The translations under genes and the position numbers were made by a program. The notes under the pieces are model-generated. The model was not told where the DNA came from and did not search any database. It worked only from the letters and a program-made list of their open reading frames with translations. This document shows, one piece after another, positions 3,719-60,450 of a DNA stretch of 64,000 nt. Source of the stretch: Isurus oxyrinchus (lineage: Eukaryota); assembly GCA_026770705.1 (NCBI GenBank), contig JANJGN010000026.1:36084001-36148000 (forward strand), given 5' to 3'. Numbering within the stretch: the first letter of the stretch is position 1; the number at the start of each line of letters is the position of its first letter.

Positions 3719-3889
3719 TCTCTGATCACGTGATCGCGACCATGTTCCCGTGCGACATGAAGTAGTTGTTCAGGGAGATACAAATGGGGAAGAAATTCCC
3801 GCTGACCTGCTGTGATCTCGGCGCTGTTTCATTTTTTTACCCCAATGATCAAAATATCTGATTCTGAAGTTCAGACTTGAGCCAAGGAG

Positions 3890-6362: not shown

Positions 6363-6364
6363 CC

Positions 6365-8810
6365 ATGCCCCCGGGTCCGGACTCCGGACCCCATGAAGTC
6401 TCAAGGCATCTGTCCAATCATGGGGAAGGAAACCTCCTGCTGATTACGACGTACGGCCCTCCCTCAGCTGATGAATCAGTGCTGCTCCATGTTGAACACC
6501 ACTTGGAGGAAGCAATGAGAATGGCAAAGGCGCTGAATGTACTCTGGGTGGGGACTTCAATGTCCCATCACCAAGAGTGGCTCGGCAACCCCACTACTGA
6601 CCGAGCTGGTCGATTCCTAGAGGACATAGCTGCTAGACTGGGTCTGCGGCAGGTGGTGAGGGAAACAACAAGGGGGGGGGGGGAAAGATACTTGACCCCA
6701 TCCTCAACAACCTGCGTGCCGCAGATGCATCTGTCCATGACAGTATTTGTAGGAGTGACCACCACACGGTCTTTGTGGAGACGAAGACCCATCTTCACAC
6801 TGAAGATAGCGTCCATTGTGTTTTGTGGCACTCCCGCCTTGCTAAATGGGATAGATTGCAAACAGATCTAGCAACTCAAGGCTGGGCAACCATGAGGCAC
6901 TGGGGACAATCAGCAGCAGCAGAATTGTACTCGAACACAATCTGTAACATCGTGGCCCGGCATATCCCCTACTCTACTATTAACAAGAAGCCAAGGGAAC
7001 AACCCCGGTTGAATGAAGAGTGCAGGAGGGCATGTCAGAAGCAGCAACAGGAATACCTAAAAATGAGGTGTTAACCTGGTGAAGCTATAACACAGGACTA
7101 CTGGCGTGCAAAATAGCATAAACAGCAAGTGATAGACGGAGCCTAGCATTCCCACAACCAACGGGTCTGGTCGAAGCTCTGCAGCCCTGCCACATCCAGT
7201 AGTGAATGGTGGTGGAAAATTAAACAACTCACTGGAGGGGGTTGGTCCAGAAATATCCCAATCCCCAATGATGAGGGAGCCCAGTATAGCAGTGCAAAAG
7301 ATAAGACTGAAGCATTCGCAATAATCTTCAGCCAGAAGTGCTGAGTGGATGATCCATCTCGGCCTCCTCCGGAGGTCCCCAGCTTCAATGATGCCAGTTT
7401 TCACCCAATTCGATTCAGTCCACGTGATATCAAGAAATGGCTGAAGGCACTGGTTGCTGCAAAGGCAATGGGTCCTGACAATATTCTAGCAATAGCACTG
7501 AAGACTTGGGCTCCAGAACTTGCTGCGCCCCTAGCCAGGTTGTTCCAGTACAGTTACAACACTAGCATTTACCTGGATATGTGGAAAATTGCCCAAGTAC
7601 GTCCTGTACACAAAAAGCAGGGCAAGCCCAACCCGGCCAATTTCTGCTCCATCAGTCTACTCTCGAACATCAGTGAAGTGATAGAAGGAGCCATCAACAG
7701 TGCTATCAAGCGGTATTTACTTGGCAATAACCTGCTCACTGCGCTCATTTTGGATTCCATCAAGGTCACTCAGTCCGTGACAGCATTACAGCCTTGGTTC
7801 AAACTTGGACAAAGAGATGGACTCGAGATGTTAGGTGAAAGTGACTGCCTTTGACATCCAGGCCGAATTTGGCAGTATGGCATCAAGAAGCCCTAGCAAA
7901 ACTGGAATAATGGGAATCAGTGGGAAAACTCTCCGCTGTTTGGAGTCATACCTAGCACAAAGGAAGATGGTTATGGTTGTTGGAAGTCAGTCATCTCAGC
8001 CCCAGGACATCAGTTCCTCAGGGTAGTGTCCTGGCCCGACCATCTTCAGCTGCTTCATCAATGACCTTCCTTCCATCTTAACGTCAGATGTAGGGATGCT
8101 TTCTGATCTTTGCTCAAGGTTCAGCACCATCCACGACTCATCAGATACTGAATCAGTCCGTTTCCAAATGCAGCAAGGGCTGAACAATATCCAGGCTCGG
8201 GCTGAGAAGTGGCAAGTCACATTCACGCCACACAAGTGCCAGACAATGACCAACTCCAACAGAATAGAATCTAACTATCGTCCCTTGACATTCATTGGCG
8301 TTACTAACGCTGAATCCCCCACTATCAAGTACCTGGGGGTTACCATTGACCAGAAACTGAGCTGGGCTAACCATATAAATATTGCAGCTACAAGAGCAGG
8401 TCAGAGGCGAGGAATCCTGCGACGAGTAACTCACCTCCCGACTCCTCAAGGCCTGTCCACCATCTACAAGGCACACGTCAGGAGTGTGCTGGCGTACACT
8501 CCACTTACCTGGGTGAGTGCAGCTCCAACAACACTCAAAAAGCTTGACACTACCCAAGGCAATGCAGCCGGTTTGATTGACAATTCGCCCACAAACATTC
8601 ACTCCCTCGACTACGGATGCACATTTGCAGCAGTGTGTACCATCTTCAAGATGCAGTGGAGGAATTCATCAAGCCTCCATAGGCAACATCTTCGAAACCC
8701 ATGACCAATACCATCTAGAAGGGCAAGGTCAGCCGATAGATGGGGACACCACCACCTGGAAGTTCCCCTCCGAGCCACAAACCATTCTGACCGGGAAATA
8801 TATTGCCGTT
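6365..8810 (+). mobile_element. Decayed non-LTR retrotransposon (APE endonuclease + RT, CR1/L2-group-like)
   Basis: Broken ORFs with KAMGPDNI, WKIAQVRPVHKK, NPANF.SISLLS, PQGSVLAPTIF, KYLGVTIDQKLSW. Many stops and frameshifts. Confidence 0.85.
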
Positions 8811-17650: not shown

Positions 17651-18129
17651 CTAATTGGTACAAAGTCTAATATTATAAACAGCAGCAGGGTCAGGTGTAG
17701 TGATAACTGGGAAAGGACCAATTGCAACACAAATAGAGATATGGAGGACGGCAGTAATAAATAAGGAAGGGCCCATTGTACTATTAATAATGACGGTCTC
17801 TAGTGCAACAGTAACTTAAGCAAAGCATAGTTTAGCATTTACAGTTACAAATGAGGGTGTGAAATACATTGAACCAGGTCTGTATAGGAATTATTAAAAC
17901 AGGGCCTTGATTGACATAAACTGAGGTAGGGTCTAGCGCAGTGATTACTGAAACAGGGCATGGTTTATTAACAACTGCGACAGGGCCTAGTGCAATGATA
18001 ATTGATACAGGGCTTGGATTGATGTAAACTGAGACAGGGCCCAGTGAAGTGATTACTTTCACAGGGCCGAGATTAATATCAACTGAGCAGGGACCAATAC
18101 AATGATTACTGATACAGGGTCTAAATTGA

Positions 18130-19420
18130 TGTAAAAGCAGAAAATGCTGGAAAACCACCACTAAATTCACTCAGCTCCTTCACCTGCTTCGTACCTGTTC
18201 TAATGAGGCCAAAACGATGCTTCTGACATGCCTTCCTACTTCCTTAAACAAGCTTCCCACCCACTGTGGTTGACAGGGCCCTCAACTGTGTCTGACCTAT
18301 CTCCCACGTCTCTGCTTTCACACATTCCTCTCTCTCACAGAATCATAATAGGGTCCCACTTGTTCTCTCGTTTCACCTCACCAGCCTCTGCATTCAAAGG
18401 ATCATCCTCCGCCATTTCTGCTAACTCCAGCATGGTGCCATCATCAATCACATCTTCCCCTCACCACCACACCCCTCACCACCACACCACCACCCACACC
18501 CCCGTAGGGGCCATTCCCTCTGGGACAGTCTGGTCCAGTCCTCCAACACCTCCAGCACCTCATCCCCTTCCCAAGGCATTTGCCCAAGCAATAAGAGAAG
18601 ATGCAACACTTGCCCATTTACCTCCTCCTTCCTGACTATCCAAGGGCCAAATATTCCTTGCAGGTGAAGAACCAATTCATTGCACCTCCTTCAATTTGGC
18701 CTCCTGCATTTGCTACTCCCAATGCGTTCTCCACTTCATCGGGGAGACCATACGCAGACTGGCAGATGGCTTTATGGAATACCTTCGGTCTGTCTGCAAG
18801 TATGACCTAGACCTTCCTGTCGCTTGCAATTTCAACACACCATCCTGCTCTCATACCCATATGTTCCTCTTTGACCTGCTGCAATGTTCCAGTGAAGCCC
18901 AATGCAAACTGGAGGAACAACACCTCATCTTCTGATTATGCACTTTACAGCCTTACTCATTTATTCATCCTTTTATCCCTTTTTTAATCCCCATTTCTAT
19001 TCCTTTTTGTACGGTTTTTCCCCAACCACCGCCTCGTTTCCCTACCACACCCCTAAAGGTGCCATCATTACTTGTTCCCTGTTGTTATTTCTCAGTGTGC
19101 TGATTCTGGTTCTGCTATTAACACATTCTGATTTCTTACCTTTATGATTCTATCAGCACCTACTTTAATCTTACCACTACCAGTGACACTCCCTTTTTCT
19201 TTTTCCCATGATATTTATCAGTCTCACCTTACCCCCACCTATTGCTTGCCTTCTATCCAGACTCACCTGCTCTACTGCGCTTAAACAACAAATGTCATCG
19301 CACTTTGAATTCTATTTCACTCTGAAGAAGAGTCAGATGGTCTCAAAAAGTTAGCTCTGCTTCTCTCACCACAGGTGAGATTTTCCAGCATTTCTTGCTT
19401 TTCTTTCAGATTTCCAGTGA
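18130..19420 (+). mobile_element. Penelope-like element with decayed GIY-YIG endonuclease
   Basis: CICYSQCVLHFIGETIRRLADGFMEYLRSV...VACNFN...KLEEQHLIF. Inverted ends gcagaaaatgctggaaaa / ttttccagcatttcttgc. Confidence 0.8.
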
Positions 19421-22400
19421 CTGCTGATACAGGGGTCTAGACTGAAACAAATTGAAGCAGGGCATACTGCAGAGATGACTGATACAGGGCCGAGATTAAT
19501 CTAAATTGAGACAGGGCCTAGTGCAGTGATTGCTGCAGGTCTAGCTGAATATAAGCTGAGACACAGCCTAGTGCATTCATGACAGACTCAGGACTTACAT
19601 TAATATAAACTGTGACAGGGCATGGTGCTGTGATTATTGATACAGGTTCAAGATCAGTATATACTGAGACAGTGCCCTTTACAGTGATAACTTTAAAAAG
19701 GGTCTTGATCAATATAACCTGAGTCAGTGCCCTTTGCAGTGATTACTGATACAGGGTATAGCTCAATGTAACTGACACATGGTCTAGTTCAGTGTTTACT
19801 GATGCATGGTCTCAATCAATATAAACTCAGGCAATGCCCAGTGCACTGATTACTGATTTAGGGCCGAGGTAAATATAAAATGAGACCGAGTCTAGTGCAG
19901 TGATTACGGATACAGGGTCCAGATCAATATAAACTGAGACAAGGTCTAGCACAGTCATTACTGATACAGGGTCTAGATTAATATAAACTGAGAGAGGGCC
20001 TAGTACAGTGATTAGTGAAAGATGGTCTGGACTAATATAAACTGAGGCAAGCCAGAGTGCAATGATAACTGATACAGGATTTAGAGCCTGCATCAGTAAT
20101 TACTGCACCAGGCCCTGTCGCAGTTTATATCATTCAAGATCCCATGTCAGTAATCACTACACTGAACACTGCCTCAGTTTATATTTACCTAGAGCCTGTA
20201 CCAGTAATCTCTGCACTGGACACGTTCTCAGTTTATATTAATCAAGACCCTGTATCAGTAATCAATGCAATAGATGCTGTCTCAATTGATATTGATCTAG
20301 ACCTGTATAAGTAATCATTGCTCTTGACCCTGTCTCAGTTTACATTAATCTTGGCCCCATATCAGTTATCTCTGCACTAGACTCTGTCCCACTTTATATT
20401 AGCTTAGCCCCTCAATCGGTAATCACTGCACTAGTTCCAGTCTGAGTTTATGCTAATCTAGTCCCTCCAGCAGTAATCACTGCAAGAGCTTCTGTCCCAG
20501 TTATATTTATCTAGGCCCTGTATCAGTGAACATTTCACCAGGGCATGTCTCAGTTTTTGTTGGTTCAGAAGCTGTTTCAGTAATCACTGCACTCAACCCT
20601 GTTACAGGATCTAGATTAATATAGAGTGAGACAGGATCTAGTGCTGTGTTTACTGATACATGGTCTCAATCAATATAAACTCAGACAATGTCCAGCGCCG
20701 TGATTATAGATACAAAGCTGAGATAAATATAAACTGAGACAGGGCCTACTGCCATGATTACTGACACAGAGCCTAGATTAATATAAACAGAGAGAGGCTC
20801 ATTTGCGGTGATTACTGATTTAGGGTTGAAATTGATATAAAATGATGCAGGGTCTAGTGCAGTGATTATTGATATAGGGTCTAAATTGATATAAAATTGT
20901 GCAGTGATTCCTGATAAAGGGTTGAAATTAATATGAACATGAGACAAGGCCAAGTGCAATGATTATTGTTACAGGGTCTAGATTGATATAAACTGAGACA
21001 GGGCCTAGTGCTGTGATTTGTGATGCAGGGTTGGATTGATATTAAATGAGACAGGGTCTTGTGCAGTTAATACTGACACAGGCTCTGAAATAATATAACC
21101 TGAGACAGGGCCATTGTCATGATTCGTGATGCAGGTTTGAGGTTAATATGAACTTAGAGAGGGCCTAGTGCAGTGATTACTGATAGAGGGACTAGATTGA
21201 TATAAATTGGGCAGGGCATAATGCAGTGATTACTGATACAGGCTTTAGATTAATATAAACTGAGAAATAGTCCAGTGCCATGCTTTTTGGTTCGGGGTGC
21301 AAATTGTTATAACCAGAACAGAGTCGAGTGCAGTGAATACTGAAACAGCTTCTGAACCAACAAAAACTGAGACATGCCCTGGTGAAATGTTCAGTGATAC
21401 AGGGCCTAGATAAATATAACTGGGACAGAAGCTCTTGCAGTGATTACTGCTGCAGGGACTAAATTAATATAAACTCAGACTGGACCTAGTGCAGTGATTA
21501 CTGATTGAGGGGCTAAGCTAATATAAAGTGGGACAGAGTCTAGTGCAGAGATAACTGATATGGGGCCAAGATTAATGTAAACTGAGACAGGGTCAAGAGC
21601 AATGATTACTTATACAGGCCTAGATCAATATCAATTGAGACAGCATCTATTGCATTGATTACTGATATAGGGTCTTGATTAATATAAACTGAGACTGTGT
21701 CCAGTGCAGAGATTACTGATACAGGCTTTAGGTAAATATAAACTGAGGCAGTGTCCAGTGTAGTGATTACTGACATGGGATCTTGATTGATATAAACTGC
21801 GACAGGGCCTGGTGCAGTAATTACTGATGCAGGCTCTAAATGAATATAAACTAAGGCAGAGTCTAGTGCAGTAATTACTGACAGTGGGCCTATTTCATAT
21901 CAACTGAGGCAGGGCCTAGTGCGGTGATTACTGATACAGTGCCTAGATTGATAAAAGCTGAGGAAGGGCAAAATAAAATATAAATTGATACTGAAAAAGG
22001 TCTAGATCAGTGTCAACTTAGACAGTGTCTAGTGCAATGACTACTGACACAGGATCTAGATGAATATAAACTGTGACAGGGTCTAGTGCATTGATTCCTG
22101 ATAGAGGGCCTAGGTTGATATAAAGTGAGGCTGGGCCTAGTGCAGTGATCACTGATACTGGATCTAGTCTAATATAAACTAGGGCAGGGGCTAGTGCAGT
22201 AAATAGTGATACAGGGTCTAGAATAATAAAACTTGTTGCAGGGCGAAGTCCAGTGAGTACTGTTACGGAGTCTGGGTTGATGTAAACTGAGACAGGGCCA
22301 TGTGTCGTGATTACTGATATAGGGTTTAGATTAATAGAAACAGATGCAGGATCTAGTGCAGTGATTACTGACAAAGGGTCCTGATTAATATAAACTGAGA

Positions 22401-25400
22401 CAGGGTCTATTGCAGTGATTACTCATAAAGGGCCTAGGTTAATATGAAATGAGACAGGTCATAGTACAGTGATGACTGATACAGGGTCTAGGCTAATATA
22501 AACTGGGATAGGGCCAAGTGGAGTGATTACTGATACAGGGTCTAGATCAATGTAAACTGGGATAGGGGCTAGTGCAGTGATTACTGATACAGGGTCTGGG
22601 CTCCTATAAACTGAGGCATTCCCTAGTTCTGTCATTATTGATACAGGGTAAGGGCTAATATAAATGGAGACAGGGTCTAGTGAAGTGATTACTCATAAAG
22701 GGCCTGGATTAATATGGATGAGACAGGTCATAGCGCAGTGATTACTGATACAGGGTCTAGGGTAATATAAACTGAGACAGGGTCTAGTGCAGTGATTACT
22801 GATGAAGGGTCTAGATCAATATAAGCTGAGAGAGAGTCTAGTGCAGTGGTTACTGATACAGGGTCTAGATTGATATAAAATGAGGCAGGCCATCATGCAG
22901 TGTCTACTGATACAGGGCCTAGATAAATAAAAACTAGTGCTTACTGATACAGGATCTAGATCAATACTAAGTGAGAGTGTCCATTGCACTGATTATTATT
23001 CAGGGACTAGATTAATACAAACTGAGATAGGGTCTAGTGCAGTGATTCCTGATGCAGGGTCTGAATCAATATAAACTGAGACAGGTCCAAATGCAGTGAG
23101 TACTGTTACAGGGTCTCGGTTGATATTCAGTGATGCAGGGCATAATGCAGTGAATACTGATACAGGGTCTAGCAAAATATAATCTGAGACAGGCTCTAGT
23201 GCAGTGATTACTGTTACGGGGTCCACATTAATATAAGCTGAGACAGTGTCCAGTGTAGTCATTACTAATAAAGGGTCTAGATTGATAGAAAATGAGCCAG
23301 GGACGAGTGCAGTGTTTACTGAGCATGGTGTTGATCAGTATAAACTCAGATAATGTCCAGTGCAGTCTTTACTGATATAGCGCTGAGATAAATATAAACT
23401 GAGACTGGGCCTACTGCAGTGATTACTGATACAGGGTCTAGATTAATATAAGCTGACACAGGATCTAGTGCAGTGATTACTGATACAGTACCTGGACAAA
23501 TATAATCTGAGACATCATCTAGTTCTGTCATTACTGATACAGGGTCTGGACTAATATAAACTGACACTGTGTCCAATGCATTGAATACTGATACGGGACA
23601 TGGATTGATATGAACTGAGTGCAGATATTACTGATACAAGGCCTAGATAAATATAAACTAGGACACAGGCTGGGGCAGTGATAACTGATACAGGGTCTAG
23701 ATACATGTTAACTGAGATAGGGCCAAGTGTAGTGATTACTGATACAAGGCCTAGTTTAATATAAACTGAGACAGGGCCTGGTGCAGTGTTCACTGATACA
23801 GGGCCTAGATAAATAAAAATGAGGACAGCAGCTATTGCAGTGATTACTGACACAGAGCCCAGATCAATACAAAGTGAGAGTGCCTGTTGCACTGATTATT
23901 AAACATGGTCTAGATTAATATAAACTGAAATTGTGTCTAGTGCAGTGATTTCTGATGCAGGGCCAGTATCAATATAAACTGAGAAAGTGTTCAGTGCAGT
24001 GATTGCTGATAAAGGGTCTAGATTAATATAAACTGAGACAGGGCCAAATATCAGTGATTACTGTTACAGGATCTAGGTTGACACGAAGTGGGGCAGGGGA
24101 TAGTGCAGAGGTAACTGATACAGGGTCTAGAACAATATAAACTGAGACTGGGTCTAGTGCACTAATTAATGTTACAGGGTCCTAATTCATATATACTGAG
24201 TCAGCACATACTGCAGTGATTACTGATATAGGCACCAGATTAAGATGAACTCAGGCAGGGCCTTCTGCAGTGATTAGTGATACAAGGTTGGATTTATATA
24301 AAATCAGACAGGCTGTATTGCAATCATTACTGATACAGGGTCTGGATCGATATAAACCAAGACAGTGACCAGTACAGTGTTCCTATACAGGGTCTAGACT
24401 AATATCAACTGATACAGAGCCTAGTGCAGTGATTACTGATACAGAGTCTAGACTGATAAAAACTGAGGCAGGGCATAATGCAGAGATTAATGATACAGGG
24501 TCTAGATTAACATAAACTGACACAGAGCCCAGTGCAGTGATAACTAATGCAGGGCGAAAATAAATATAAACTAGGACAGAAGCTAGTGCAATGATTAATG
24601 ATACAGGATCCGGATCAATATAAACTGAGATGGTGCCCAATGCAGTCATTATTAATACAGGGTCTAGATTAATAGAAACTGAGGCAGGGTCGGGTGCTGT
24701 GTTTACTGATACATGCTCTTTATCAATTGAAACTCAGACAGTGTCCAGTGCAGTGCTTACTGATACAGGGCTGAGAGAAAAATAAACTGGGACAGAGCAT
24801 AGTGCAGAGATAACTGACATGTGGTCTAGAAGAATATAAACTGAGACAGGGCTTTGTGTACTGATTAGTGTTACAGGGTCCAGATTAATACAAACTGAGA
24901 CAGGGCCTAATGCAATGATTACTGATACAGGGTCTAGGTTAATTTAAACTCAGACAATGTCCAGTGCAATGTTTACTGATACAGGGCTGAGATAAATACA
25001 AACTGAGACTGGGCCTACTGCAATGATAACTGATACAGGGTCAAGATTAATATAAACTGAGACAGGGTCGAGTGCAGTGATTACTGATACAGTATCTGTA
25101 CTAATATAAACTGAGACAGTGTCCAATGCGTTGATTACTGACACAGGATCTGGATTGATATGGACTGAGTGCAGATACTACTGATACAGGGCCGAGATAA
25201 ATATAAACTAGGACAGGAGCTAGTGCAGCTATTACTGATACAGGGTCTCGATCAATATAAACTGAGACAGTGTCCATTGCAGTGATTACTGATGCAGTGT
25301 CTGAATCAATATAAACTGAGACAGTACAAAAACAGAATTACCTGGAAAAACTCAGCAGGTCTCGCAGCATCGGCAGAGAAGAAAAGAGTTGACGTTTCGA

Positions 25401-28070
25401 GTCCTCATGACCCTTCAACAGAACTGAGTGAATATTAGGAGAGAGATGAAATATAAGCTGGTTTAAGGGGGGAAGGGGTGGGGGGAGAGAAGTCGGGGGG
25501 GGTGGTGGTGTTGGTGTGGTTGTAGGGACAAGCAAGCAGTGATAGAAGCAGTTAATCAAAAGGTGTCACAGACAAAAGAACAAAGAGGTGTTGAAGGTGG
25601 TGATATCTAAACAAATGTGCAAATTAAGAATGGATGGCAGGGCACTCAAGGTACAGCTCTAGTGGGGGTGGGGTGGAAAGACTAGCTGGGTATAAAAAAA
25701 TTAAAAATAATGGAAATAAGTGGGAAAAGAAAAATTTATATAAATTATTGGAAAAACAAAAGGAAGGTGGAAGAAACAGAAAGGGGGTGGGGATGGAGGA
25801 GGGAGGTCAAGATCATAAAGTTGTTGAATTCGATATTCAGTCCAGAAGGCTGTAAAGTGCCTAGTCGGAAGATGAGGTGCTGCTCCTCCAGTTCGTGTTG
25901 GGCTTCACTGGAACAATGCAGCAAGCCAAGGACAGACATGTGGGCAAGAGAGCAGGGTGGAGTGTTAAAATGGCAAGCGACAGGGAGGTTTGGGTCATTC
26001 TTGCAGACAGACCGCAGGTTTTCTGCAAAGCGGTCGCCCAGTTTACGTTTGGTCTCTCCAATGTAGAGGAGACCACATTGGGAGCAACGAATGCAGTAGA
26101 CTAAGTTGGGGGAAATGCAAGTGAAATGCTGCTTCACTTGAAAGGAGTGTTTGGGTCCTTGGACGGGGAGGAGAGAGGAAGTGAAGGGGCAGGTGTTGCA
26201 TCTTTTGCATGGGCATGGGGAGGTGCCATTGGTGGGGGCTGAGGAGTAGGGGAGGAGTGGACCAGGGTGTCCCGGAGGGAACAATCCCTACAGAATGCCA
26301 CCGGTTGGGGAGGATGGGGGGGGGGGGGGGGGGGGGGGGGGGGCGGTGGGGTAGGGGTGGTGAAGGGAAGATGTGTTTGATGGTGGCATCATGCTGGAGT
26401 TGGCGGAAATGGCTGTGATATCTTTTGATTATCTGCTCCTATCACTGCTTGCTTGTCCCTAAACCACACCACCGCCTCCCCCCACCACAACTTCTCTCCC
26501 CCTCCCCCAACCCACCCACCCCCCCACCCCCACCTTAAACCAGCTTATATTTCACCCCTTTCCTAATATTCACTCAGTTCTGTTGAAGGGTCATGAGGAC
26601 TCGAAACGTCAACTCTTTTCTTCTCCGCCAATGCTGCCAGACCTGCTGAGTTTTTCCAGGTAATTCTGTTTTTGTTTTGGATTTCCAGCATCCGCAGTTT
26701 TTTTGTTTTCATAACTGAGACAGTGTTCAGTGCAGTGATTACTGATACAGGCTCTAGGTAAATATTAACTGAGACAGGGCCTGGTGCAGTGATTACAGTG
26801 ACAGGGCCTAGTTTAATATAAACTGAGACAGGGCCTGGTGCAGTGTTCACTGATACAGGACATAGATAAATATAACTGGGACAGGGGTTGTTGCAGTGAT
26901 TACTGCTGCAGGGACTAAATAAATACAAACTGAGACTTGGTCGAGTGCAGAGATAACTGAGACAGGGCCAAGATCAATAAAAATTGAGGCAGGGTCTAGT
27001 GCACTGATTAATGATACAGGTCTAGATTAATATAAACTCAGACAGTTTCTAGTGCAGTGATTACTGACACAGGGTATAGATTGATATATACTGAGGCAGG
27101 GCATAATGCAGTGATTCCTGTTTCAGGGTCTTGAGTAATATAAACTGAGGCAGTTTCCAGAGCAGTGATTACTGATACAGGCTCTAAATTAATATAAACT
27201 GAGACAGCGGCTAGTGCAGTGATTACTGATACAGGGACTAGATTAATATGAAGTAAGACAGGCTATCATGCTCGTATTACTGATACAGGTACTATATTAA
27301 CATAAATTGAGCCTGCATCTAATGCAGAGATTACTAATACAGGGTCTAAATCAATATAAATTGAGACACTGCCTTGGACATTGAATACTGATACAAGGTC
27401 TTGATTAATAGAAGCTGAGGCAGGAGCAAGTGTAATGATTACTGATACAGGCTCTAATTTGATATAAACTGAGGCAGAGCATAGTGCAGTGATTACTTAT
27501 ATAGGGTCAAGATAAGTATAAGCTGGGACAGAGTCAAGTGCAATGATTACTGATTAAGGTTATAGATTAATATAACTTGAGATGGGCTCTACTGCTGTGA
27601 TCACTGATTCCGGCTCTTGATTAATATAAACTAAGAAAGGCTCTACTGCAGTGATTACTGTTTCAGGGTCTAAACTAATAGAAACTGAGACAGGGTTTGT
27701 GTAGTGATTACTGAAGATTAATATAAACTCAGGCAGGGTCTAGTGCAGTGATTCAGCATCTAGATTACTAAAAACTGAGACTGGATCCAGTGCAGTGTTT
27801 ACTGATACAGCGTCTAGATTTATATAATTTGAGGCAGGGTCTAGCGCAGAGAAGACAGATACAGGGTCTGGATTATTATAGACTGAAACAGGGTCTGGTG
27901 CAGTGATTACTGACATAGCGTCTAGATTAATACAAACTGAGACAGGGTCTACTGCAGTGATTACTGACACAGTGTCTAAATTAATATAAACTGAGACAGT
28001 GTCTAGTGCAGTGATTCCTGAATTCTGTTCTGGACGAATATAAACTGAGACAGGGCCAAGTGCAATAATT
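19420..28070 (+). repeat. ~8.6-kb satellite array, 54-bp unit made of two 27-bp subunits
   Basis: Consensus ACAGGGTCTAGTGCAGTGATTACTGAT-ACAGGGTCTAGATTAATATAAACTGAG. Interrupted by an inverted block (20080-20600) and a Penelope element. An older extension lies at 17690-18125. Confidence 0.95.
25326..26710 (-). mobile_element. Penelope-like element, 5'-truncated, with inverted terminal duplication
   Basis: ORF 26284-25745: CKRCNTC...FTCISPNLVYCIRCSQCGLLYIGETKRKLGDRFAENLRSV...VACHFN...LGTLQPSGLN (GIY-YIG). Ends 25326-25560 and 26420-26675 are inverted copies of each other. Confidence 0.9.
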
Positions 28071-29319
28071 ACTTCATCATTGACGCCCGTATCCCAAGAA
28101 CAAATTAAAACGCTGCAAAATACTGCGGATTCTGGAAAACTAAAGCAAGACAAAAAAAATAACACTCAGCAGGTCAGTGGGCATCAATAGAGAGAGAAAA
28201 AGATCAAACTTGCAGGTCGATGACAGATGCAAAATCTCCCTTGGTATTACTCTGTAGAGCAGGACTGATCTTCCCACTATCCTTCACCAATATTCATTCT
28301 TCAACTAAAATCACATATTGTCTAGTCATCTTTCACAGCTTCATTCATGGGATCTTGCTGTGCACAAATCACCGGATGGATTTCCAATATCACAGCAGTG
28401 ACGAAACTTCAACAAAACTACGAGTTTTAAGGATTTTAGGGTTTCATCAGGTCATAATCAACATTCTTTCAATGCAAACTCTTTCTAAGTGTTAGCATTT
28501 TAAAATGCTAGTTGTGATACGTTGAAAACTGTGAGACTAATATAATAATAGGTCGCTCCTCTGGCTGCTGTTTTAAACTGTCCGGTTTAAATGGGTTAAG
28601 TCTTCCAATAAATTGACATTCAGTGGAATTCTAGCCTGTTCAAAGATTCTTCGTTGATTGTGATAGGACAATTTTCAGAACTGAATTATTAATTTAAATG
28701 TAATTTTAATTGTTTGAAATAAATAACATCTGTTCTAATGGATCTTGAAGTGGTTTCTATTAATTTTGTACCAACTGTCAATATTCTTAAAATAAACCCT
28801 TGTTTTGAGTTGGAACCAATCAATAAGTGTCTGTGTTTATCTGGTTTTGCTGCCATGAACACTTCATTGAAATCAGTCAGGCGTTTATGTAAATAAACAC
28901 AGAAATAGAAGTCCCAGATTAGATTCTGGAGACACAAAAACACAGCAAATATTTCCCCATCAACAAAGCACAGAAATGGAGTCAAACATGCAAATACATC
29001 AACAGATTCCAGTAGCAATTGTTTTTTGGACATTTTTAAAATCAGTTATGTGAGAATTATGTCACGATGATATCTATGTTGAGAATTAAGAAAGATTCCC
29101 ACTTATCATGAAATATAATGTCACGGCAAATGTGTTTGTACAGATTTCCTGTATCCTCTGTCTCTCCCTCTGTCTCTTTCTCCTCTCTGGTTCTGTGTCT
29201 TGTCTCTCCACCATGGGTCATTGTCTTCACTCCACAACATGAAGTGAATGTCTAGCCAATGTATTCTCCCAGCACGATTCAGACACTTCAAACTAAATGG
29301 ATCTAATGAAATGGATTGG

Positions 29320-39269: not shown

Positions 39270-39450
39270 GTAAGATGGGGCGTGGATCCTGTCGCCGCCT
39301 CTACCAGGGAATCAACAGGCGGCGCCTGGAATCCCGCCCCCTTCTGCCGGGTATTTAAATGCCGCTCACTGGGACCGGAATCCAACAGTCCGGGAGCTGG
39401 TTTGTTCACTGAGTTCTGGACAGAACCATTTTCCCCAGATGACCAGAAGG
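39270..39450 (+). promoter_or_regulatory. VH promoter region
   Basis: TATA-like TATTTAAAT at ~39351, 100 bp before the ATG. GC boxes (gggcgtgg, cccgcccc). No perfect octamer nearby, as expected for shark VH. Confidence 0.6.
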
Positions 39451-39496
39451 ATGAGGCCGGCGATTTCTCTCAGTTTGTTGCTGACTTTCTTATCCC
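39451..39496 (+). CDS. IGHV: IgM VH leader exon
   Basis: MRPAISLSLLLTFLS-C|gtgagt, phase 1. An in-frame upstream ATG lies at 39439. Confidence 0.95.
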
Positions 39497-39622
39497 GTGA
39501 GTAGTTTTTATTGTCCAAGTCTCTCACTGTTACTGTCTGTGTTAGTCTCTCTCTAGAATGTTACAGAGTCAGGAATCATTTCACCAGGGTTAATCTTCGG
39601 GGTTTTTGATATATTTTTACAG

Positions 39623-39928
39623 GTGTCCAGTCGGATGTTGTGTTGACTCAGCCAGAGGCAGAGACCGGGCGTCCCGGAGGCACCCTGAGACTGACCTGTA
39701 AAACCAGCGGCTTCGATCTTGACAGCTCCTACATGAACTGGGTCCGACAGGTTCCCGGACAAGGGCTGGAATGGCTGGTTTACTACGGTGATTCATCGGA
39801 CAACAGCTATGCCCCAGCAATTAAGAATCGATTTACGGCGTCCAAAGACACTTCAAGGAGCATCTTCTCCTTGGACATGACGAACTTGAAGATTGAAGAC
39901 ACCGCCATCTATTACTGTGCCAGAGAGT
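39623..39928 (+). CDS. IGHV: IgM VH exon, intact
   Basis: [52 protein letters not shown]...[33 protein letters not shown]. Both Cys and the Trp are present. Typical shark mu VH. Confidence 0.98.
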
Positions 39929-39967
39929 CACAGCGAAAGGAACCAGGGCTGGACCCGAACAAGAACA
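39929..39967 (+). other. VH 23-RSS
   Basis: CACAGCG, 23-nt spacer, ACAAGAACA. Confidence 0.95.
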
Positions 39968-40335
39968 GATCGAGAGGGACTCAACAACTTCCATCGTAAT
40001 CTGACGGTCAGTACTTGTTTTAAATGTATTATTAACTGTAATGATCAGACCCAGACAACAAGCCACTTGTGACAAAAGTAAAACAGCAAATTTAACAGGA
40101 AACCTAACAAACCAATCGATATAATGGGCTGAGCTTTTCGCTGTGTTTATATTTACTGATAACAGTTACCGCAATTACAGACCTGGCTATAATACCCATT
40201 TTAACCTGCCTGACACTTGGAGGAGGGTCTCTATTCATTGAGTTTTGTAAATTGCTGCATGAATTCTAAACCGGATCAGAAGTAAACGACTATTTGAAGT
40301 GAAGATTGGGATGCAGCACTGAACAGAGCAGGTGC

Positions 40336-40415
40336 AGTTTTTGTGCGTCTGTATTTCACTGTGATACTACAGTGGGTCACAGTGCTGTGCACAGCGACAT
40401 CCTCATACAAAAACC
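40336..40415 (+). other. IGHD: D1 segment (coding 40364-40377) with 12-RSS and 22-RSS
   Basis: AGTTTTTGT-12-CACTGTG [ATACTACAGTGGGT] CACAGTG-22-ACAAAAACC. Open in all three frames (ILQW, YYSG, TTVG). Confidence 0.96.
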
Positions 40416-40717
40416 TCAGCGAAAGAGTTTGTTCAAACTGGTGATCAATATCACAGCAGGAACGTCAAAGAAAATGAGAGTTAAGTAAAATAATGGGTAG
40501 AGGTTTGCAAAAAGGTATAAAAGTCTTCCGCTTTGTTCGTGTTGACGGACACTCTAAATCTGCACAGAGTCTTTAAAAGTATTCCAATTGCATTTATAAA
40601 TATATTCACCAGCACAGCTTGAAATATCTCACCGATTCGCTCTTAAGTGAGTCGGAATCAGGTTTTTGTGAGCGCAGTGAAATTAAATCTTTGTATTTTC
40701 AGTGAACAGTCTGCCGC

Positions 40718-40799
40718 AGTATTTGACATGGTGTGTCTCACTGTGATAACTGGGATGGCCCACAGTGTTACATTCCCTGGGCTGTGCCATACAATAACT
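40718..40799 (+). other. IGHD: D2 segment (coding 40746-40760) with 12-RSS and 23-RSS
   Basis: AGTATTTGA-12-CACTGTG [ATAACTGGGATGGCC] CACAGTG-23-ACAATAACT. No nonamer at 12-nt spacing on the 3' side. Confidence 0.92.
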
Positions 40800-41127
40800 G
40801 TCCCTGCACGAAAAAGACAGAAATCCACCATTATTTTAAATATTCATAAGTCAGGGGCAAAGTAAGTTCACGATAAATCTTCACGAAATTATATTTGCGT
40901 TGTAGTTATCTTTAGGTATTCATCAATGATCCTCATGTTTTACATTTCACAGAGTAACATATGAACATGTTCTTGTAATCAGCAACCGATTAATGTATAA
41001 TTATCACAGCTTTTCCATCTTAAACCATGTTTTTTGGGCAGCGCTGGACATAACTAATACTTCACTGTAAATATAGTTGGGTTGTAAAAGCGAGCACTGA
41101 CCCAGGCAGACTCAATTAATGCTGAGG

Positions 41128-41155
41128 GGTTTTTGTATTGACAGTAACTGCTGTG
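41128..41155 (+). other. 12-spacer RSS in front of JH
   Basis: GGTTTTTGT, ATTGACAGTAAC (12 nt), TGCTGTG. Confidence 0.88.
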
Positions 41156-41205
41156 GATCGCTACGGACTACTGGGGACAAGGGACCATGGTGACGGTGAC
41201 TGCAG
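41156..41205 (+). CDS. IGHJ: JH segment (possibly a germline-joined D-J)
   Basis: IATDYWGQGTMVTVTA-G|gtaag. WGxG motif and phase-1 donor. Confidence 0.96.
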
Positions 41206-44200
41206 GTAAGAACCATGCACTTATTTAGTAACTGCTTTATTTGAGTCTTTGCTTTATATTTTTGTCTATTTTAATAACTGATTCGTTTACTGAAACTTGG
41301 GTTTGCTGGATTCTGTATGGAGATATTTTACAATGTTTCATGTGTTTCTGCTGAAATTGAGTTATATAATTCGGCTGTGTCTCAACAAAAAGGGATTCAA
41401 TCCCTGGCTGTGGTGATTTGGTGTTTATCTGCTGAATTTACTATGTGGCCGGGTTATGTGAAGTATCTAACATTTGTGAAAACAGTTTGACGTTCCTGCA
41501 ATGTTTAATCTCGGTGACATATAATGGCTGCGGGTTTTACCATCTGTTGCACAAAGGTTTAAATATGTTTGAAATCAAACCCAATATCAATAACATATGC
41601 TTAAGTTTCAATGTTAATTTATTGAACATGTTCCGCCTACTCACAATGCTGTTGACATTATTCCATATTTCTCTTTAGTTTAATTATTCATTAATTTGGT
41701 GACGAGCGGGTTGTCTGGTTTTGATATTGAGATTTTCTTGCAATGTTACATTGGATTCTGTTGGAATAGTTTGTGGAATTGAGCTGCTTCTCCATGAAAC
41801 GGGTTTCAGTCCCTCAGTGATGTGTTTTGGTGTTTTTCTCCTGATGAGATTGTGTGTCTGGGTGACTTTGAACAAGTAGAATTTGTGGAACAGTTTGGCG
41901 GTTCTGCATTGTTTCTGCTTTGTTTAAACTCGGTGATATTGAGCGGTTACACGTTTTGTGATTGAAAGGAAACAGTCTACGCGTTTGTTTCTGCTTGAAG
42001 CGCCATTGTCAGCAGAAAACGGGCAGAATTCAGAAATGGGGGAAAAGTGTTTAAAGATGCGTTAGAGCATTTTGTTTTTATTTTAAGTCATAACTGCAGA
42101 TTAAACTAAACCATGGATTAAGATGCTCAATCAGAACATAATTCGTTACTGCAATCAGAAACTATATAATTAACAAGTTTTCAAATTGTAGAGTAAAATT
42201 AATATAATTCAAGCAATTATAATGTGGTAATATTTCTCCATATTGACTGAACAGCTTTCATGTTAACCTAATTGATCATTAATCGCCTTTCACAATTCTG
42301 CTGTGCACTGCGCACTATTAACTTGATCGGGAAAATTTTTAGGGTGGAATCATTTTGTGATTATGTATGAAAACATTTCAATGAGAGTATACTGATTCTA
42401 CAGAATTGTTCATTTCCACAAGAGATTTTGAATTCTTTAAATCCCTGATAACGTTTGCATTGATTTAAAAACGAGTTTGACATTGCAGGTTGGCAATATG
42501 TCTATCCGGTTATTACATTCTTTCTGTGCAGCCGTAACCATATTATTCCTTCAATGTCATTGGGATTGGATAGCGAGATAATTGTCACTAATCTAATCGT
42601 AAACAGTTTTCTGGGGGGTGGAATTCACTGGCAGTCAAGGAATTGTTCTTATTTTTTTTTGAACTGCAGGAAGGTGCAAACTGCGTATGAATAGAGATTG
42701 ACAAGGAAACGCTTGAAATTCGAACAGATTAATTTAATTGCAAACATTAATGTTAGTTTTGAACTTAATAACAACATTCTGTCTCCCATTGCTGTACTGT
42801 GCACAGGACAGAATTATAGGAGAAGAACAGATTATATCTGAAATTCATGCTTAATACTTATTAACTATTAAATTGAAGAGCAAAATCTCTAATCGTTTTG
42901 CTGGTTATATTTCAGTGGCGCAGGTGATCTGAATAATTTTTTCTCATCAAATTGTATACTGATTAATTTGGATCGTCTTTCAATGAACAATATATTTAAC
43001 AATTAAATTATAGTGATTTTATCAAGGAAGCACTTTTATTGATAATAAGTAACTGCGAGGAACATTTTTTTACATGTAATTTTGAGTTAAGACAAGTTTG
43101 CTTTAGCAAACAAATGATGTTACAGTTCGTAGACACTTGATGTGATGTTACCTCGGCCAGATTTGAAAGTATTTAAAATATTCCACTCATAAATTCGTCT
43201 TGTGAATTACTCGATGAGAATAGATGGAATTTATGATTTCTCAATGCGTTCAGAAACACGCATAGTTTACAATTTTGTATGTTAAAACAGAGCAGTGGAA
43301 GTAAAAGTAAAATAGTAAATAGTGATTAAATTTAAGTAAAATTGATATTCTTGCCTGAAGGTTACCATCTCGTAATTTGAAGTTTATTGTTTAACATTGT
43401 TTCAGTGTCAAGTTGATTTAAATAAACCCCAATTATTTCACAAAGTACCAGGGAGAAACAAATTTTCAATTTTTGAAAACCATATTTTTCATATTGTAGA
43501 GTAGAAATCAATTAACAAGGAAATAAATTGACAATAACAAAATAATTAACTTACAATATAATATTAGTGATAATTAATTCAACATAAATGAACTCCAACA
43601 GTTAAATAGTATACTGTTCATTATTGTGAATGCAAATTCTCAGTGGAGAGAATTTTTAATTTTATCCAAAATGAATTTAGAAAAGAATATTTTTCTTATT
43701 CAGCTGTGCTCTGATCGATAAGGTGTTTCATCTCGATGATTTTATTGGTTATATTTATCCCTAAAATCAAATCAAATCAGCAGGTAGTTGGTTTCAATGT
43801 GAATGTTTTCTGATTTGTTTAATTCTTACCCTGTCATTGATTCTCTGTTACGGACACCAAATTACCCTGAATCTGTAATATTTGCTGTGCTCACTTTCAG
43901 GGTAACTTAAATCTTACATTGTTTGGAGATTGGAGATTGACAGGGAGAATTAGTTGGACTTCAAAGGGAGTTTTGAAATGAAAATCAGATTAATTTCAAA
44001 GAAGTTATGGAATAATTGGAGTAAATTGACCATTGATTAATTAGAATCAAACAGCTTGAATGAAATAGACAGATTGAACAGATCTATCTGCTGGGAACTC
44101 GCTTGTTGCACCATTTGTGTCTGTTCTGTTTCTGTGCGTGTGGTCACTGTGCTGGGACCAGAAATCTTCTTGACTGGTTGTTAACCTTCTGGTTCGCTCT

Positions 44201-46812: not shown

Positions 46813-47021
46813 NNNNNNNNNNNNNNNNNNNNNNNNNNNNNNNNNNNNNNNNNNNNNNNNNNNNNNNNNNNNNNNNNNNNNNNNNNNNNNNNNNNNNNNN
46901 NNNNNNNNNNNNNNNNNNNNNNNNNNNNNNNNNNNNNNNNNNNNNNNNNNNNNNNNNNNNNNNNNNNNNNNNNNNNNNNNNNNNNNNNNNNNNNNNNNNN
47001 NNNNNNNNNNNNNNNNNNNNN
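46813..47021. other. Assembly gap (N run)
   Basis: 209 N. Confidence 1.
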
Positions 47022-48639: not shown

Positions 48640-51600
48640 GAGAGCCTGGGGGAAAGGGCAGGCAGGTGGGGGGAAGGAAAGAGAGTCGGGGAAAAGGGTA
48701 GCGATCCAGTGGAAAGTGCATATAGATGAGGCAAAGGAATGGGAAGAGCCGGGGGAAGGGCAGGCACCCGTGGAATAAGTGCAGAGAGCTATGGGAGAAA
48801 GGGTAGAGAGGCGGGAGGGGGAAAGGGCAGGGCGGCAGAGATGGGAAAGGGCAGAGAGGCGGGAGGGGGAAAGGGCAGAGAGAGGAGAGGGGGCAAGGTC
48901 AGAGTGGGGGTATGGGCAAGGGCAGAGAGGGGGGAGTGGGCAAGGGCAGAGAGTGGGGAGTGGGCAAGGGCAGAGAGACGAGAGGGGGGAAAGGGCAGAG
49001 AGGCGGAGGGGGGAAGGGCAGAGCAGCGGAGGGGGAAAGAGCAGAGAGGCAGGAGGGGGAAAGGGCAGAGAGGCGGGAGAGGGAAAGGGCAGTGAGGGGA
49101 CAAAATGGTTAATGAACAAGGGAAAAAGTCAGTGAGCCGGACAAAAGCACAGAGTCGTGGAGTAAATGCAGAGAGCTGGGGGAGAAAGGACAGAGAGGTG
49201 GGAGGGGGAAAGCGTAGAGAGGAGGCGGGCAAAGGGCAGAGAGGCGGGACGTGGAAAGGGCAGAGAGGCGGGACGTGGAAAGGGCAGAGAGGCGGGACGT
49301 GGAAAGGGCAGAGAGGCAGGAGGGGGAAAGGGCAGAGAGGCGGGAGGTGGAAAGGGCAGAAAGGCAGGAGGGGGAAAGGGCAGAGAGGCGGGAGGTGGAA
49401 AGGGCAGAGAGGTGGGAGGTGGAAAGGGCAGAGAGGCGGGAGGGGGAAAGGGCAGAGAGGCGGGAGGGGGAAAGGGCAGAGAGGCGGGAGGGGGAAAGGG
49501 CAGAGAGGCAACAGAAAGGTTAATGAACTGGGGAAAAAGTCAGAGAGCCAGACAAAAGCGCAGAGAGCTGTGGAGTAAATGGAGAGAGCCGGGGGAGAAA
49601 GGGCAGAGAGGTGGAGGGCGGAAAGGGCAAAGAGGCGGGGGGGTAAAGGGCAGAGATGGGGCAGGGGGAAGGGACAGAGAGGTGGGAGGTGGAAAGGGTT
49701 GAGAGGCAGGAGGGAGAAAGGACAATAGAGGCGGGAGGGGGAAAGGGCATAGAGGCGGGAGGGGGAAAGGGCAGAGAGGCGGGAGAGGGAAAGGGCAGAG
49801 AGGCAGGAGGGGGAAAGGGCAGAGAGGCAGGAGGGGCAAAGGGCAGAGAGGCGGGAGGGGGAGAGGGCAGAGAGGCGGGAGGGGGAGAGGGCAGAGAGGC
49901 GGGAGGGGGAGAGGGCAGAGAGGCGGGAGGGAGAAAGGGCAGAGAGGCGGGAGAGGGAAAGGGCAGAGAGGGGGGGAAGGACAGAGAGGAGGGAGGGGGA
50001 AAGGGAAGAGAGGCGGGAGAGGTAAAGGGCAGAGAGGCAGGAGAGGGAAAGGGCAGAGAGGGGGGAGAGGGAAAGGGCAGAGAGGCAGGAGGGGGAGAGG
50101 GCAGAGAGGTGGGAGAGGAAAAGGGCAGAGAGGCGGGAGAGGAAAAGGGCAGAGAGGCGGGAGAGGAAAAGGGCAGAGAGGCGGGAGGGGAAAAGGGCAG
50201 AGAGGCAGGAGGGGGAAAGGGCAGAGAGACAGGAGGGGGAAAGGGCAGAGAGACAGGAGGGGGAAAGGGCAGAGAGGCGGGAGGGGGAAAGGGCAGAGAG
50301 GCAACAGAAAGGTTAATGAACTGGGGAAAATGTCAAAGAGCCAGATGAAAGCGCAGAGAGCCGTGGAGTAATGCAGAGAGCCGGGGGAGAAAGGACAGAG
50401 AGGCGGGATGGGGAAAGGGCAGAGAGACGGAGGGGGGAAAGGGCAGAGATGGGGGGAAGGACAGAGAGGAGGGAGGGGGAAAGGGCAGAGAGGCAGAGGG
50501 GGGAAAGGGCAGAGATGGGGGCAAGGGCAGAGAGGCGGGAGTGGGCAAGGGCAGAGAGGTGGGAGTTGGAAAGGGCAGAGAGTTGACAGAAAGGTTAACG
50601 AACTGGGGAAAAAGTCAGAGAGCCGGCTGAAAGCGTAGAGAGCCGTGGAATAAATGCAGATAGCCGGGGGAGAAAGGGCAGTGAGGCGGGAGGGGGGATA
50701 GGGCAGAGAGGCAGGAGGGGGAAAGGACAGAGAGGCAGGAAGTGGAAAGAGCAGAGAGGCAGGTGGGGGAAAGGGCAGGGAGGCAGTAGGGAAAGGGCAG
50801 AGAGGCGGGAGGGGGAAAGGGCAGGGAGGCAGTGGGGAAAGGGCAGGGAGGCGGGAGGGGGAAAGGGCAGGGAGGTGGGAGGGAGAAAGGGCCGAGAGGC
50901 GGGGGGGAAAGGGCAGAGAGGCGGAAAGGGCAGAGAGACAGGAGGGGGACAGGGCAGAGAAGTGGGTTGGAATGAAGGGCAGAGAAGTGAGGGGTGCAGG
51001 AAGGGCAGAGAGACAATGGAAAAGGCAGAGAGATGGGCGAAAGGTCAGCGAGCCGGGGGAAAGGTCAAAGGGTCAGGCAAAAGTGCAGAGGGCCTTGGGC
51101 TAAGTGCAGAGAGCTGGGGGAGAAAGGGCAGAGAGGCAGGAGGGTGACAGGACACACAAGCAGGGAATGAAGGACAGTGAGGTGATGGAAAGGTCAGTGA
51201 GCCGGGGAAAAGGTCAGAGAGCCAGGCAAAAACACAGAGAACACTGGAGTAAATGCAGAGAGGCAGGGGAGAAAGGACAGAGAGGCGGGAGGGGTAAAGG
51301 GCAGAGAGGCAGGGGAGAAAGGGCAGAGAGGCGGGAGGTGGAAAGGGCAGAGAATTGGGGGGTTGGAAGGGCAGAGGGAAGGGGGGAATGGGCAGAGGGG
51401 AGGGGTGAAATGTCAGAGAGGAGGTGGAGAAAGGGTAGAGAGGAGGGGGAAAGGGCAGAGAGATGGGGGAAAGGTCAGAGAGCCGGGCGAAAGTGCAGAC
51501 AATCTTGAACTAAGTGCAGAAAGCTGGGGGAGAAAGGGCAGAGAGGCGGAGGGGGGAAAGGACAGAGAGGCAGGAGGGCAACAGGGCCGACAGGCGGAGG

Positions 51601-52010
51601 ATGAAGGGCAGTGAGGTGACGGAAAGGTCAGCAAACTGGGGAAAATGTCAGAGCCAGGCGAAAACACAGAGAACCATGGTGTAAATGCAGAGAGCTGGGG
51701 GAGAAAGGACAGAGAGGCGGGAGGGGGAAAAGGCAGAGAGGCGGGAGGTGGAAAGGGCAGCGAGGCGGGCGAAAGGGCAGGGAATCTTGGATTAAGTGCA
51801 GAGATCTGAGGGAGAAAGGGCAGAGAGGCAGGAGGGGTAAAGGGCAGAGAAGCGGGGGTAAAGGGCATACAGGCGTGTGGGAAAGGGCTGAGAGGCAGGG
51901 GGAAGGGCAGAGAGGCTGGGGACAGGGCAGAAGGCGAGGTTGCAGCGGGCAGAGAGGCGGCAAAAGTGCAGAGTCGGGCTATAGCGGGGAGAGCAGGGCG
52001 AAAGCAGTTG
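48640..52010 (+). repeat. G-rich, purine-biased ~24-bp tandem repeat in the JH-Cmu intron
   Basis: Unit AAGGGCAGAGAGGCGGGAGGGGGA. A higher-order spacer (aaggttaatgaactggggaaaa...gcagagagc) recurs at ~49105, 49515, 50307 and 50590. Confidence 0.95.
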
Positions 52011-54559: not shown

Positions 54560-54859
54560 CGACACCGTCTTCGCCCACTCTCTACAAACTGGTCTCCTCC
54601 TGTCAGCAACACAACACTGACGGCTCCATAACTTACGGCTGTTTAGTGATGGACTACTCCCCAGAAATCACCAGCCTGACCTGGAAGAAAGATGGGCAGC
54701 AGATTACCACTGGATTTAAGACATACCCGTCGGTGAGAAACCAGAAGGGAACCTACACCCTGAGCAGCCAGTTAACCATCACCGAATCAGAGGGAGAATG
54801 CAGCAAAATCAAGTGTGAAGTTCAACACAGCGGCTCAGACAAGAGCATTGAATGGCAAT
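54560..54859 (+). CDS. IGHM: IgM Cmu1 exon
   Basis: cccag|(A)[45 protein letters not shown]...YTLSSQLTI...[16 protein letters not shown]|gtaagt. 300 nt, phase 1/1. Confidence 0.96.
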
Positions 54860-55076: not shown

Positions 55077-55376
55077 GCCCTCCAACTGTTCTCCTCACCG
55101 TGAGTTCCCGGGAAGAAATCAGAACCAACAAATTTGCAATCGCCGTCTGTTCAATCATCGATCTCCGTTCAAAGTCAATCACCGTGAAGTGGCTGAAGAA
55201 TGGACAACCCATGAATTCAGGAATTGTCACCTCTCCTGTCTTTGAAGTGAACGGGAAATTCTCGGCAACCAGTCGGCTGAAAGTCTCCGCTGGGGAATGG
55301 TTCACCGACGCTGTCTATACCTGTCAGGTCACTCACCAAGGGGTCACCCAAAGTCGAAACGCCACCAAGTGTGAGG
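55077..55376 (+). CDS. IGHM: IgM Cmu2 exon
   Basis: ttcag|[10 protein letters not shown]...[21 protein letters not shown]...[14 protein letters not shown]...KCE-G|gtaag. 300 nt. Confidence 0.96.
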
Positions 55377-56000: not shown

Positions 56001-56312
56001 ATGATTCCCACTGCCCCAACGATCCCACAATTACTCTACTGCCACCTCCAATAGAACAGGTCTTACTGGAGGCGACCGTGTCCTTAACCTGCATCATTTC
56101 TAATGCTCCTTATGGAGTCCTCGTGTCCTGGACACAAGAGAAGAAGCCTTTGAAATCAGAGATCGCCGTCCAACCGGGAGAGGATCCCAACAGCGTGGTC
56201 AGCAACGTAAACATCTCGACACAAGCCTGGCTGAGTGGGGTTGAGTTCAACTGTGTGGTGAGCCATCAGGATCTGCAGACTCCTTTAAGAAATTCCATCC
56301 ACAAGGAACAAG
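56001..56312 (+). CDS. IGHM: IgM Cmu3 exon
   Basis: cacag|[44 protein letters not shown]...[29 protein letters not shown]|gtaag. 312 nt. Confidence 0.96.
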
Positions 56313-57008: not shown

Positions 57009-57400
57009 TTAAAGACCCGCGGGAACCGACCGTGTCTGTCCTCCTGCCCTCGGCAGAAGATGTCTCCGCTCAGAGATTCGTCTCCCTCAGCTGCTTAGTG
57101 ACAGGTTTCTCCCCGCGAGAGATTTTCGTCAAGTGGACCGTCAATGACAAGCCAGTGAATCCCGGGAACTACAAGAACACCGAGGTGGTGGCGGAGAACG
57201 GCAATCGCTCCTTCTTCATGTACAGCCTGTTATCCATTGCAGCGGAGGAGTGGGCCAGCGGCGCTTCTTACTCCTGTGTGGTGGGACATGAAGTGATCCC
57301 CTTGAAGATCATCAACAGAACGGTTGATAAATCCAGCGGTAAACCAAGCTTTGTGAATATTTCCCTTGCACTGATGGACTCTGTTAATTCATGTCAATGA
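57009..57400 (+). CDS. IGHM: IgM Cmu4 exon with secretory tailpiece
   Basis: [43 protein letters not shown]...YSCVVGHE...VDKSS|[20 protein letters not shown]. Internal donor G|GTAAA after 57338. NIS sequon and penultimate Cys present. Confidence 0.98.
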
Positions 57401-60322: not shown

Positions 60323-60450
60323 ATTCCACAGACCGCATCTGGATTGAAGACTCTGAGGATGATAACGGCAACATCTGGACAACCGCTTCTACATTCATCA
60401 TCCTATTCTTCCTGAGCATTTTCTACAGCGCTGCCGTCACTCTGGCGAAG
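60323..60450 (+). CDS. IGHM: IgM transmembrane exon TM1
   Basis: cgtag|(D)STDRIWIEDSEDDNGNIWTTASTFIILFFLSIFYSAAVTLAK|gtgaga. CART motif. Absent from the ORF track. Confidence 0.96.

Follow-up and report, generated by a model that had tools for sequence, protein, structure and literature searches.

An IgM minilocus of Isurus oxyrinchus with a TCR delta/beta-type order of recombination signals, probably arisen by germline inversion of its D2–J fragment

Introduction

How could a shark IgM gene come to carry the recombination signal order of a TCR locus? Why antigen-receptor loci differ in the arrangement of their 12- and 23-bp recombination signal sequences (RSSs) is an old question. The canonical IgM minilocus of cartilaginous fish has the order V-23 / 12-D1-22 / 12-D2-12 / 23-J. 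The window, by which we mean the whole 64,000-nucleotide stretch of DNA analysed here, contains an IgM cluster in which the signals between D2 and J depart from this order. A preliminary description, made from the sequence, had likened the layout to that of TCR delta and beta and had offered two origins for it: germline fusion of J with the terminal 12/12 D of an ancestor that had three D segments, or a true swap of RSS polarity at D2 and J.

The favoured answer to the general question, as given by Lewis and Wu (PMC2193153), is that RAG acting in germ cells has swapped signals by hybrid joining, and in that paper it is based on one documented case, from 1988. The case is a D1–D2 inversion in IgM of the horned shark (Heterodontus francisci), reported by Kokubu et al. 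in 1988 and cited through the same source, where it is read as a germline hybrid joining event that exchanged 12- and 23-RSSs. Fragment re-ligation as hybrid joints has been described for somatic recombination (PMC2193153).

Results

A complete IgM minilocus in the window

One complete IgM minilocus is present in the window, with a leader, V, D1, D2, J, Cmu1–4 with secretory tail, and TM1. Its coding features are as follows.

39439–39496, plus strand: leader exon (MTRRMRPAISLSLLLTFLS), from its translation
39623–39928, plus strand: VH exon, open, ending in YYCARE (Pfam V-set, E=1.3e-17)
40364–40377, plus strand: D1 coding segment, ATACTACAGTGGGT, between two heptamers
40746–40760, plus strand: D2 coding segment, ATAACTGGGATGGCC, with a 3' end, GGCC, that is a 4-nt palindrome
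41156–41205, plus strand: JH coding segment, reading IATDYWGQGTMVTVTA and followed by a GT donor, with a 5' end, GATC, that is a 4-nt palindrome
54560–54859, plus strand: Cmu1 exon (Pfam C1-set, E=1.4e-15)
55077–55376, plus strand: Cmu2 exon (Pfam C1-set, E=3.4e-16)
56001–56312, plus strand: Cmu3 exon (Pfam C1-set, E=1.8e-8)
57009–57400, plus strand: Cmu4 exon with an IgM-type secretory tail (20 residues) and stop codon (Pfam C1-set, E=2e-21)
60323–60450, plus strand: membrane exon TM1 (...NIWTTASTFIILFFLSIFYSAAVTLAK)

One VH, two D and one JH segment, all pointing the same way, fit into about 2 kb and are separated by intervals of 435, 368 and 395 bp. In a protein search the V had 73–78% identity with VH proteins from Scyliorhinus, Chiloscyllium, Mustelus and Heterodontus, and the secretory tail after Cmu4 is of mu type, with a Cys in its penultimate region. 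The leader–V intron (39497–39622, GT..AG) is absent from contigs of the RNA-type runs X17 and X15, which join 39496 to 39623, and splicing of J to Cmu1 was likewise seen, as RNA-type contigs that end at 41205 continue into Cmu1-like sequence. Given the similarity of V to shark VH proteins and the presence of Cmu exons, the gene is a shark IgM cluster, and an apparently intact one. Identity as a TCR locus was considered and rejected, since V groups with shark VH proteins and the constant region consists of Cmu exons that end in an IgM tail.

The J–Cmu1 intron, at about 13.4 kb, contains at 48777–51922 a G/A-rich 24-nt unit (GGGGGAAAGGGCAGAGAGGCGGGA) repeated in tandem about 130–140 times. This array has a GC content of about 0.6 and a strong purine skew on the coding strand, and is switch-region-like. 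The same intron holds a 209-base run of N at 46813–47021 (an assembly gap or masked sequence) with CA/TC-rich low-complexity flanks. A long satellite-like tandem repeat with strong GC skew precedes the IgM cluster, at 17800–28200, and gives reiterated '...PVSVITALGPVSVYI...' ORFs on the minus strand. ORFs at 6365–8704 (for example 7345–7854 and 8096–8704) resemble reverse-transcriptase-type retroelement fragments, as judged from their translations. No inverted repeat of at least 60 nt was found in positions 1–7000 of the window, and none of the ORFs of at least 85 aa at 680–6362 was V-domain-like when the translations were judged by eye.

Signal order of TCR delta/beta type

A consensus scan of both strands recovered six signals, at the positions given in the preliminary description and including the 23-spacer signal 3' of D2 and the 12-spacer signal of J that it had pointed out. 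The signals are listed below.

39929–39967, plus strand: V RSS, CACAGCG-23-ACAAGAACA (consensus scan)
40336–40363, plus strand: D1 5' RSS, AGTTTTTGT-12-CACTGTG, homologous to the D2 5' RSS (consensus scan)
40378–40415, plus strand: D1 3' RSS, CACAGTG-22-ACAAAAACC, with perfect heptamer and nonamer (consensus scan)
40718–40745, plus strand: D2 5' RSS, AGTATTTGA-12-CACTGTG (consensus scan)
40761–40799, plus strand: D2 3' RSS, CACAGTG-23-ACAATAACT, the reverse complement of which is a J-type 23-RSS (consensus scan)
41128–41155, plus strand: J RSS, GGTTTTTGT-12-TGCTGTG, the reverse complement of which is a D-3'-type 12-RSS, CACAGCA-12-ACAAAAACC

The order read from the window is V-23 / 12-D1-22 / 12-D2-23 / 12-J. 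Where shark IgM grammar has a 12-bp spacer 3' of D2 and a 22/23-bp spacer at JH, the spacers here are 23 and 12 bp, respectively. They match instead, as had been claimed, the grammar of TCR delta and beta (V-23, D with 12 at its 5' and 23 at its 3' side, J-12); the D1 3' spacer of 22 bp is inside the customary tolerance of plus-or-minus 1. Neither of the swapped signals is damaged, and their heptamers keep CAC on the coding side. Signals scoring at least 14/16 against the consensus numbered 4 in the window compared to 0.06 expected from block shuffles, and those scoring at least 13/16 numbered 9 compared to 0.95; the higher score is reached by four of the six gene-segment signals. The nonamer GGTTTTTGT occurs 4 times in the window (0.72 expected).

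Readings with a 12-bp spacer 3' of D2 and a 23-bp spacer at J were rejected: the sequence 12 nt past the D2 3' heptamer is GGCTGTGCC and that 23 nt upstream of the J heptamer is TAATGCTGA, neither of which is nonamer-like. As for indels that might restore the canonical spacing, none of those listed for the contigs of two DNA runs, aligned at 80% likeness, lay inside a signal spacer.

The 5' signals of D1 and D2 together with the first coding bases ATA (40334–40366 and 40716–40748) are 73% identical over 33 nt, a similarity that would fit an old duplication behind D1 and D2. A candidate relic RSS at 40688–40720 had the support of one 14-nt match at 86% only and was discarded. The base-composition skews of the three intersegments did not reveal their orientation, and the intersegments could not be aligned to one another.

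A signal-bounded fragment reversed in related clusters

Public contigs were aligned to positions 39300–41400 of the window, and the alignment coordinates, rather than the contig letters, were the basis of the comparison. The feature that emerged is given here with its source.

40761–41155, no strand assigned: signal-bounded D2–J fragment, 395 bp, inverted relative to canonical clusters (record 13)

Record 13 is a 1,221-nt contig from run X15, which is labelled with an organism (organism B) other than that of the window and is guessed to be RNA. It matches the plus strand of the window at 39964–40102, 40234–40419 and 40502–40748, and then the minus strand over exactly 40761–41155 (395 nt, 38 mismatches, 1 gap, ~90% identity), with nine letters between 40748 and the flipped fragment and 40 letters after it. 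The D2 3' heptamer begins at 40761 and the J heptamer ends at 41155; both positions are RAG cleavage sites, so that the breakpoints fall at heptamer/coding borders at the resolution of alignment coordinates. By these coordinates, record 13 has CACAGCA-12-ACAAAAACC after D2 and nonamer-23-CACTGTG in front of the next coding segment. Since the fragment lies reversed in it, this relative, as read from the alignment, has the classical 12-D2-12 / 23-J arrangement.

A joint of 40761 to 41166 on opposite strands was found in X2 (depth 697.9) and X11 (depth 62), two DNA runs from separate studies that carry the organism label of the window. In this joint the J coding segment is directly preceded by the reverse complement of the window D2 23-RSS, which is to say that it is a canonical J with a 23-RSS. 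Both depths exceed many-fold those of individual long contigs from the respective runs, and a further contig from X2 (record 27) aligns to 41026–40761 and stops exactly at 40761. The J with a 23-signal was thus seen in DNA runs of the window's own organism, and the 12-signal after D2 only in the organism B contig. On the strength of the X2/X11 joint, canonical-type clusters coexist with the window's cluster in this organism, and the canonical form seems to be the majority; the inverted form was seen only in the assembly, and the canonical J junction in two DNA runs at high depth.

Taken at the level of alignment coordinates, the window's cluster differs from canonical ones by inversion of the signal-bounded D2–J fragment. 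The polarity swap at D2 and J suggested in the preliminary description is thereby supported, and takes the form of an inversion of the whole 40761–41155 fragment relative to record 13. Metagenome scans for the J coding pattern and for the V protein gave no match.

A germline-joined D(D)J relative was also encountered in DNA runs X2 and X11, where CTCCGACAGAAGTCTGGGTAT separates a D1-type 12-RSS from J (41165 onward). The junction (40363/41165) is identical in the two runs. This paralog is a cluster other than the window's.

Joins permitted on paper by this order

The joins open to this gene follow from its spacer lengths and the 12/23 rule. The V signal (23) would be allowed to pair with D1, D2 or J (12), the D1 3' signal (22) with D2 or J, and the D2 3' signal (23) with J, so that V-J, V-D1-J, V-D2-J and V-D1-D2-J joins would all be permitted on paper. 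The same list, a direct consequence of the spacers, had been put forward earlier. Skipping of D2 is not open to a canonical cluster. Because the grammar equals that of TCR delta and beta, the 3' signal of a TCR D segment could, on paper, pair with this J. Restrictions beyond the 12/23 rule could forbid such joins.

Rearranged contigs that run from V (39918–39920) to J (41160–41169) were found three times in the RNA-type run X15 and once in the DNA run X2, with V and J separated by 17–33 letters that are non-germline or come from a D. Several of them contain a ATACTGGG(G)TGG core that resembles a paralogous D2. Since these contigs are not assignable to the window's cluster, they say nothing on its D usage.

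Discussion

A probable route by RAG hybrid joining

It is quite probable that the D2–J fragment 40761–41155 of an apparently intact IgM minilocus was inverted in the germline by RAG hybrid joining. In an ancestral canonical cluster (12-D2-12 / 23-J), RAG would have paired the D2 3' 12-RSS with the J 23-RSS and cleaved at both heptamer/coding borders. The signal-ended fragment would then have been re-ligated in reverse as two hybrid joints, instead of yielding a coding joint and an excised signal circle. The old J 23-RSS would in consequence stand after D2 and the old D2 12-RSS before J, giving V-23 / 12-D1-22 / 12-D2-23 / 12-J. Of the six coding ends, only the two next to the fragment carry four-nucleotide palindromes (GGCC and GATC); these resemble P nucleotides at hybrid joints, which is a weak, post hoc hint, each having a 1-in-16 chance of arising anyway.

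We infer both that RAG was the agent of the inversion and that the canonical form is ancestral and the inverted form derived, the latter on the basis of outgroup layouts and contig depth. To our knowledge, JH carries a 23-RSS in horned-shark IgM and throughout tetrapod IgH. For mouse, the IgH signal layout is stated in PMC2435157.

The mechanism already has a published precedent in the horned shark D1–D2 inversion (PMC2193153), and in this respect the preliminary description overstated its case. A search of the available full texts found none giving the RSS spacers of shark IgM D2 and J, and an earlier description in this species is possible.

Alternative explanations

An inversion is symmetrical, and contig alignment alone gives it no direction; the TCR-type grammar (12-D2-23 / 12-J) might be the older one in this lineage, with the canonical clusters derived from it by a like inversion. 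In TCR, D segments have 12/23 signals (PMC3457774), and the common ancestor of Ig and TCR could have had them too. We regard this as unlikely, as the canonical J junction is many-fold deeper in both DNA runs, the palindromic coding ends lie at the borders in the window's cluster, where they are expected of an inversion product, and the outgroup JH signals, together with the mouse layout, are of the 23 type. A still smaller chance is given to an artefact in which the assembler flipped the 395-bp fragment and the true locus is canonical. Such an error would fit with the finding that no listed contig, read in the orientation of the window, crosses either edge of the inversion, and with the content of the best DNA runs, which hold only 0.33–0.39 of the 31-mers of the stretch. 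Against it, the sole inverted repeats at the borders are the 7-nt heptamers, which are too short to mislead an assembler, and at D2 and the 5' end of J the window is unlike the canonical relatives.

The two signals are imperfect inverted repeats of each other, and an inversion made by replication template switching, or by recombination between inverted signals, might by chance have included both of them without RAG. The 12-RSS and 23-RSS share homology over only 7+9 nt, however, broken by unequal spacers, and the alignment breakpoints coincide with the start of one heptamer and the end of the other, which are RAG cleavage sites; this makes a non-RAG inversion very improbable. Least probable in our estimation is the other origin raised earlier, in which J and the last 12/12 D of a three-D ancestor were fused in the germline, with a 12-RSS left before the D3–J fusion. 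The unusual 5' end of J (IATDY) would agree with it, and the organism does have germline-joined D(D)J clusters, with a 12-RSS, 21 nt and then J (40363 to 41165) in both DNA runs. It is rejected because the D2–J interval, signals and all, has its homologue in the reversed D2–J interval of a two-D relative (record 13), and because a D3–J fusion would keep its orientation and would leave the 23-signal after D2 unexplained. On this origin the J 5' flank should match a D 5' flank of paralogs in the same orientation, but it matches, in reverse complement, the sequence after D2 in that relative. Inversion of the fragment by RAG hybrid joining is thus the reading that we prefer.

Comparison with known systems

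The inverted cluster can be set beside four known systems. With the horned shark variant IgM it shares, as that gene is described in PMC2193153, a pair of V-D-D-J-C clusters related by an inverted RSS-terminated fragment and a reading in terms of germline RAG hybrid joining with exchange of a 12-RSS and a 23-RSS. The horned shark flip lies between D1 and D2 in that account, whereas the flip described here lies between D2 and J, so that J changes its signal type. Unlike the horned shark variant as portrayed there, the whole gene gains a TCR delta/beta grammar, and with it direct V-to-J pairing on paper.

The canonical shark IgM minilocus has the same one V, two D and one J, about 370–440 bp apart and in one orientation, the same Cmu1–4, secretory tail and TM exons, and V, D1 and D2 5' signals as expected. 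The present cluster differs from it in the D2 3' spacer (23 not 12), in the J spacer (12 not 23), and in its long J–Cmu1 intron with a 3-kb G/A-rich array of 24-nt repeats.

The spacer grammar of the present cluster is identical to that of TCR delta and beta loci (V-23, 12-D-23, 12-J). D segments at those loci carry 12/23 signals, an asymmetry that permits D–D joining and D skipping (PMC3457774). Unlike TCR loci, the cluster has a Cmu constant region and a VH; it is an Ig gene whose grammar would be convergent through rearrangement. The germline-joined shark Ig clusters (VD-J, V-DJ and VDJ) would have in common with it an origin in RAG activity in germ cells. They are, however, coding joints that remove signals, while in the present cluster no segments are fused and all six signals are kept.

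Implications for antigen-receptor loci

The window's cluster would be a second, independent case of germline signal exchange, at a different interval from the first. A single step would turn an IgH-type into a TCR delta/beta grammar and leave the gene otherwise intact. That the result is a working IgM gene which, by virtue of its TCR-type grammar, forms V-J joins lacking a D and joins with a single D in vivo, with a wider and shorter-skewed range of CDR3 lengths and two-way exchange of segments with TCR alpha/delta, is possible but doubtful; if true, it would be a living demonstration that Ig and TCR grammars can be interconverted by one RAG-mediated germline inversion.

Canonical and inverted clusters in one genome would form a natural matched pair, in which the effect of signal grammar on D usage and CDR3 length could be seen. 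Such a pair also bears on whether 'beyond 12/23' restrictions exist in sharks, and on signal compatibility as a contributor to the Ig/TCR trans-rearrangements reported in these animals.
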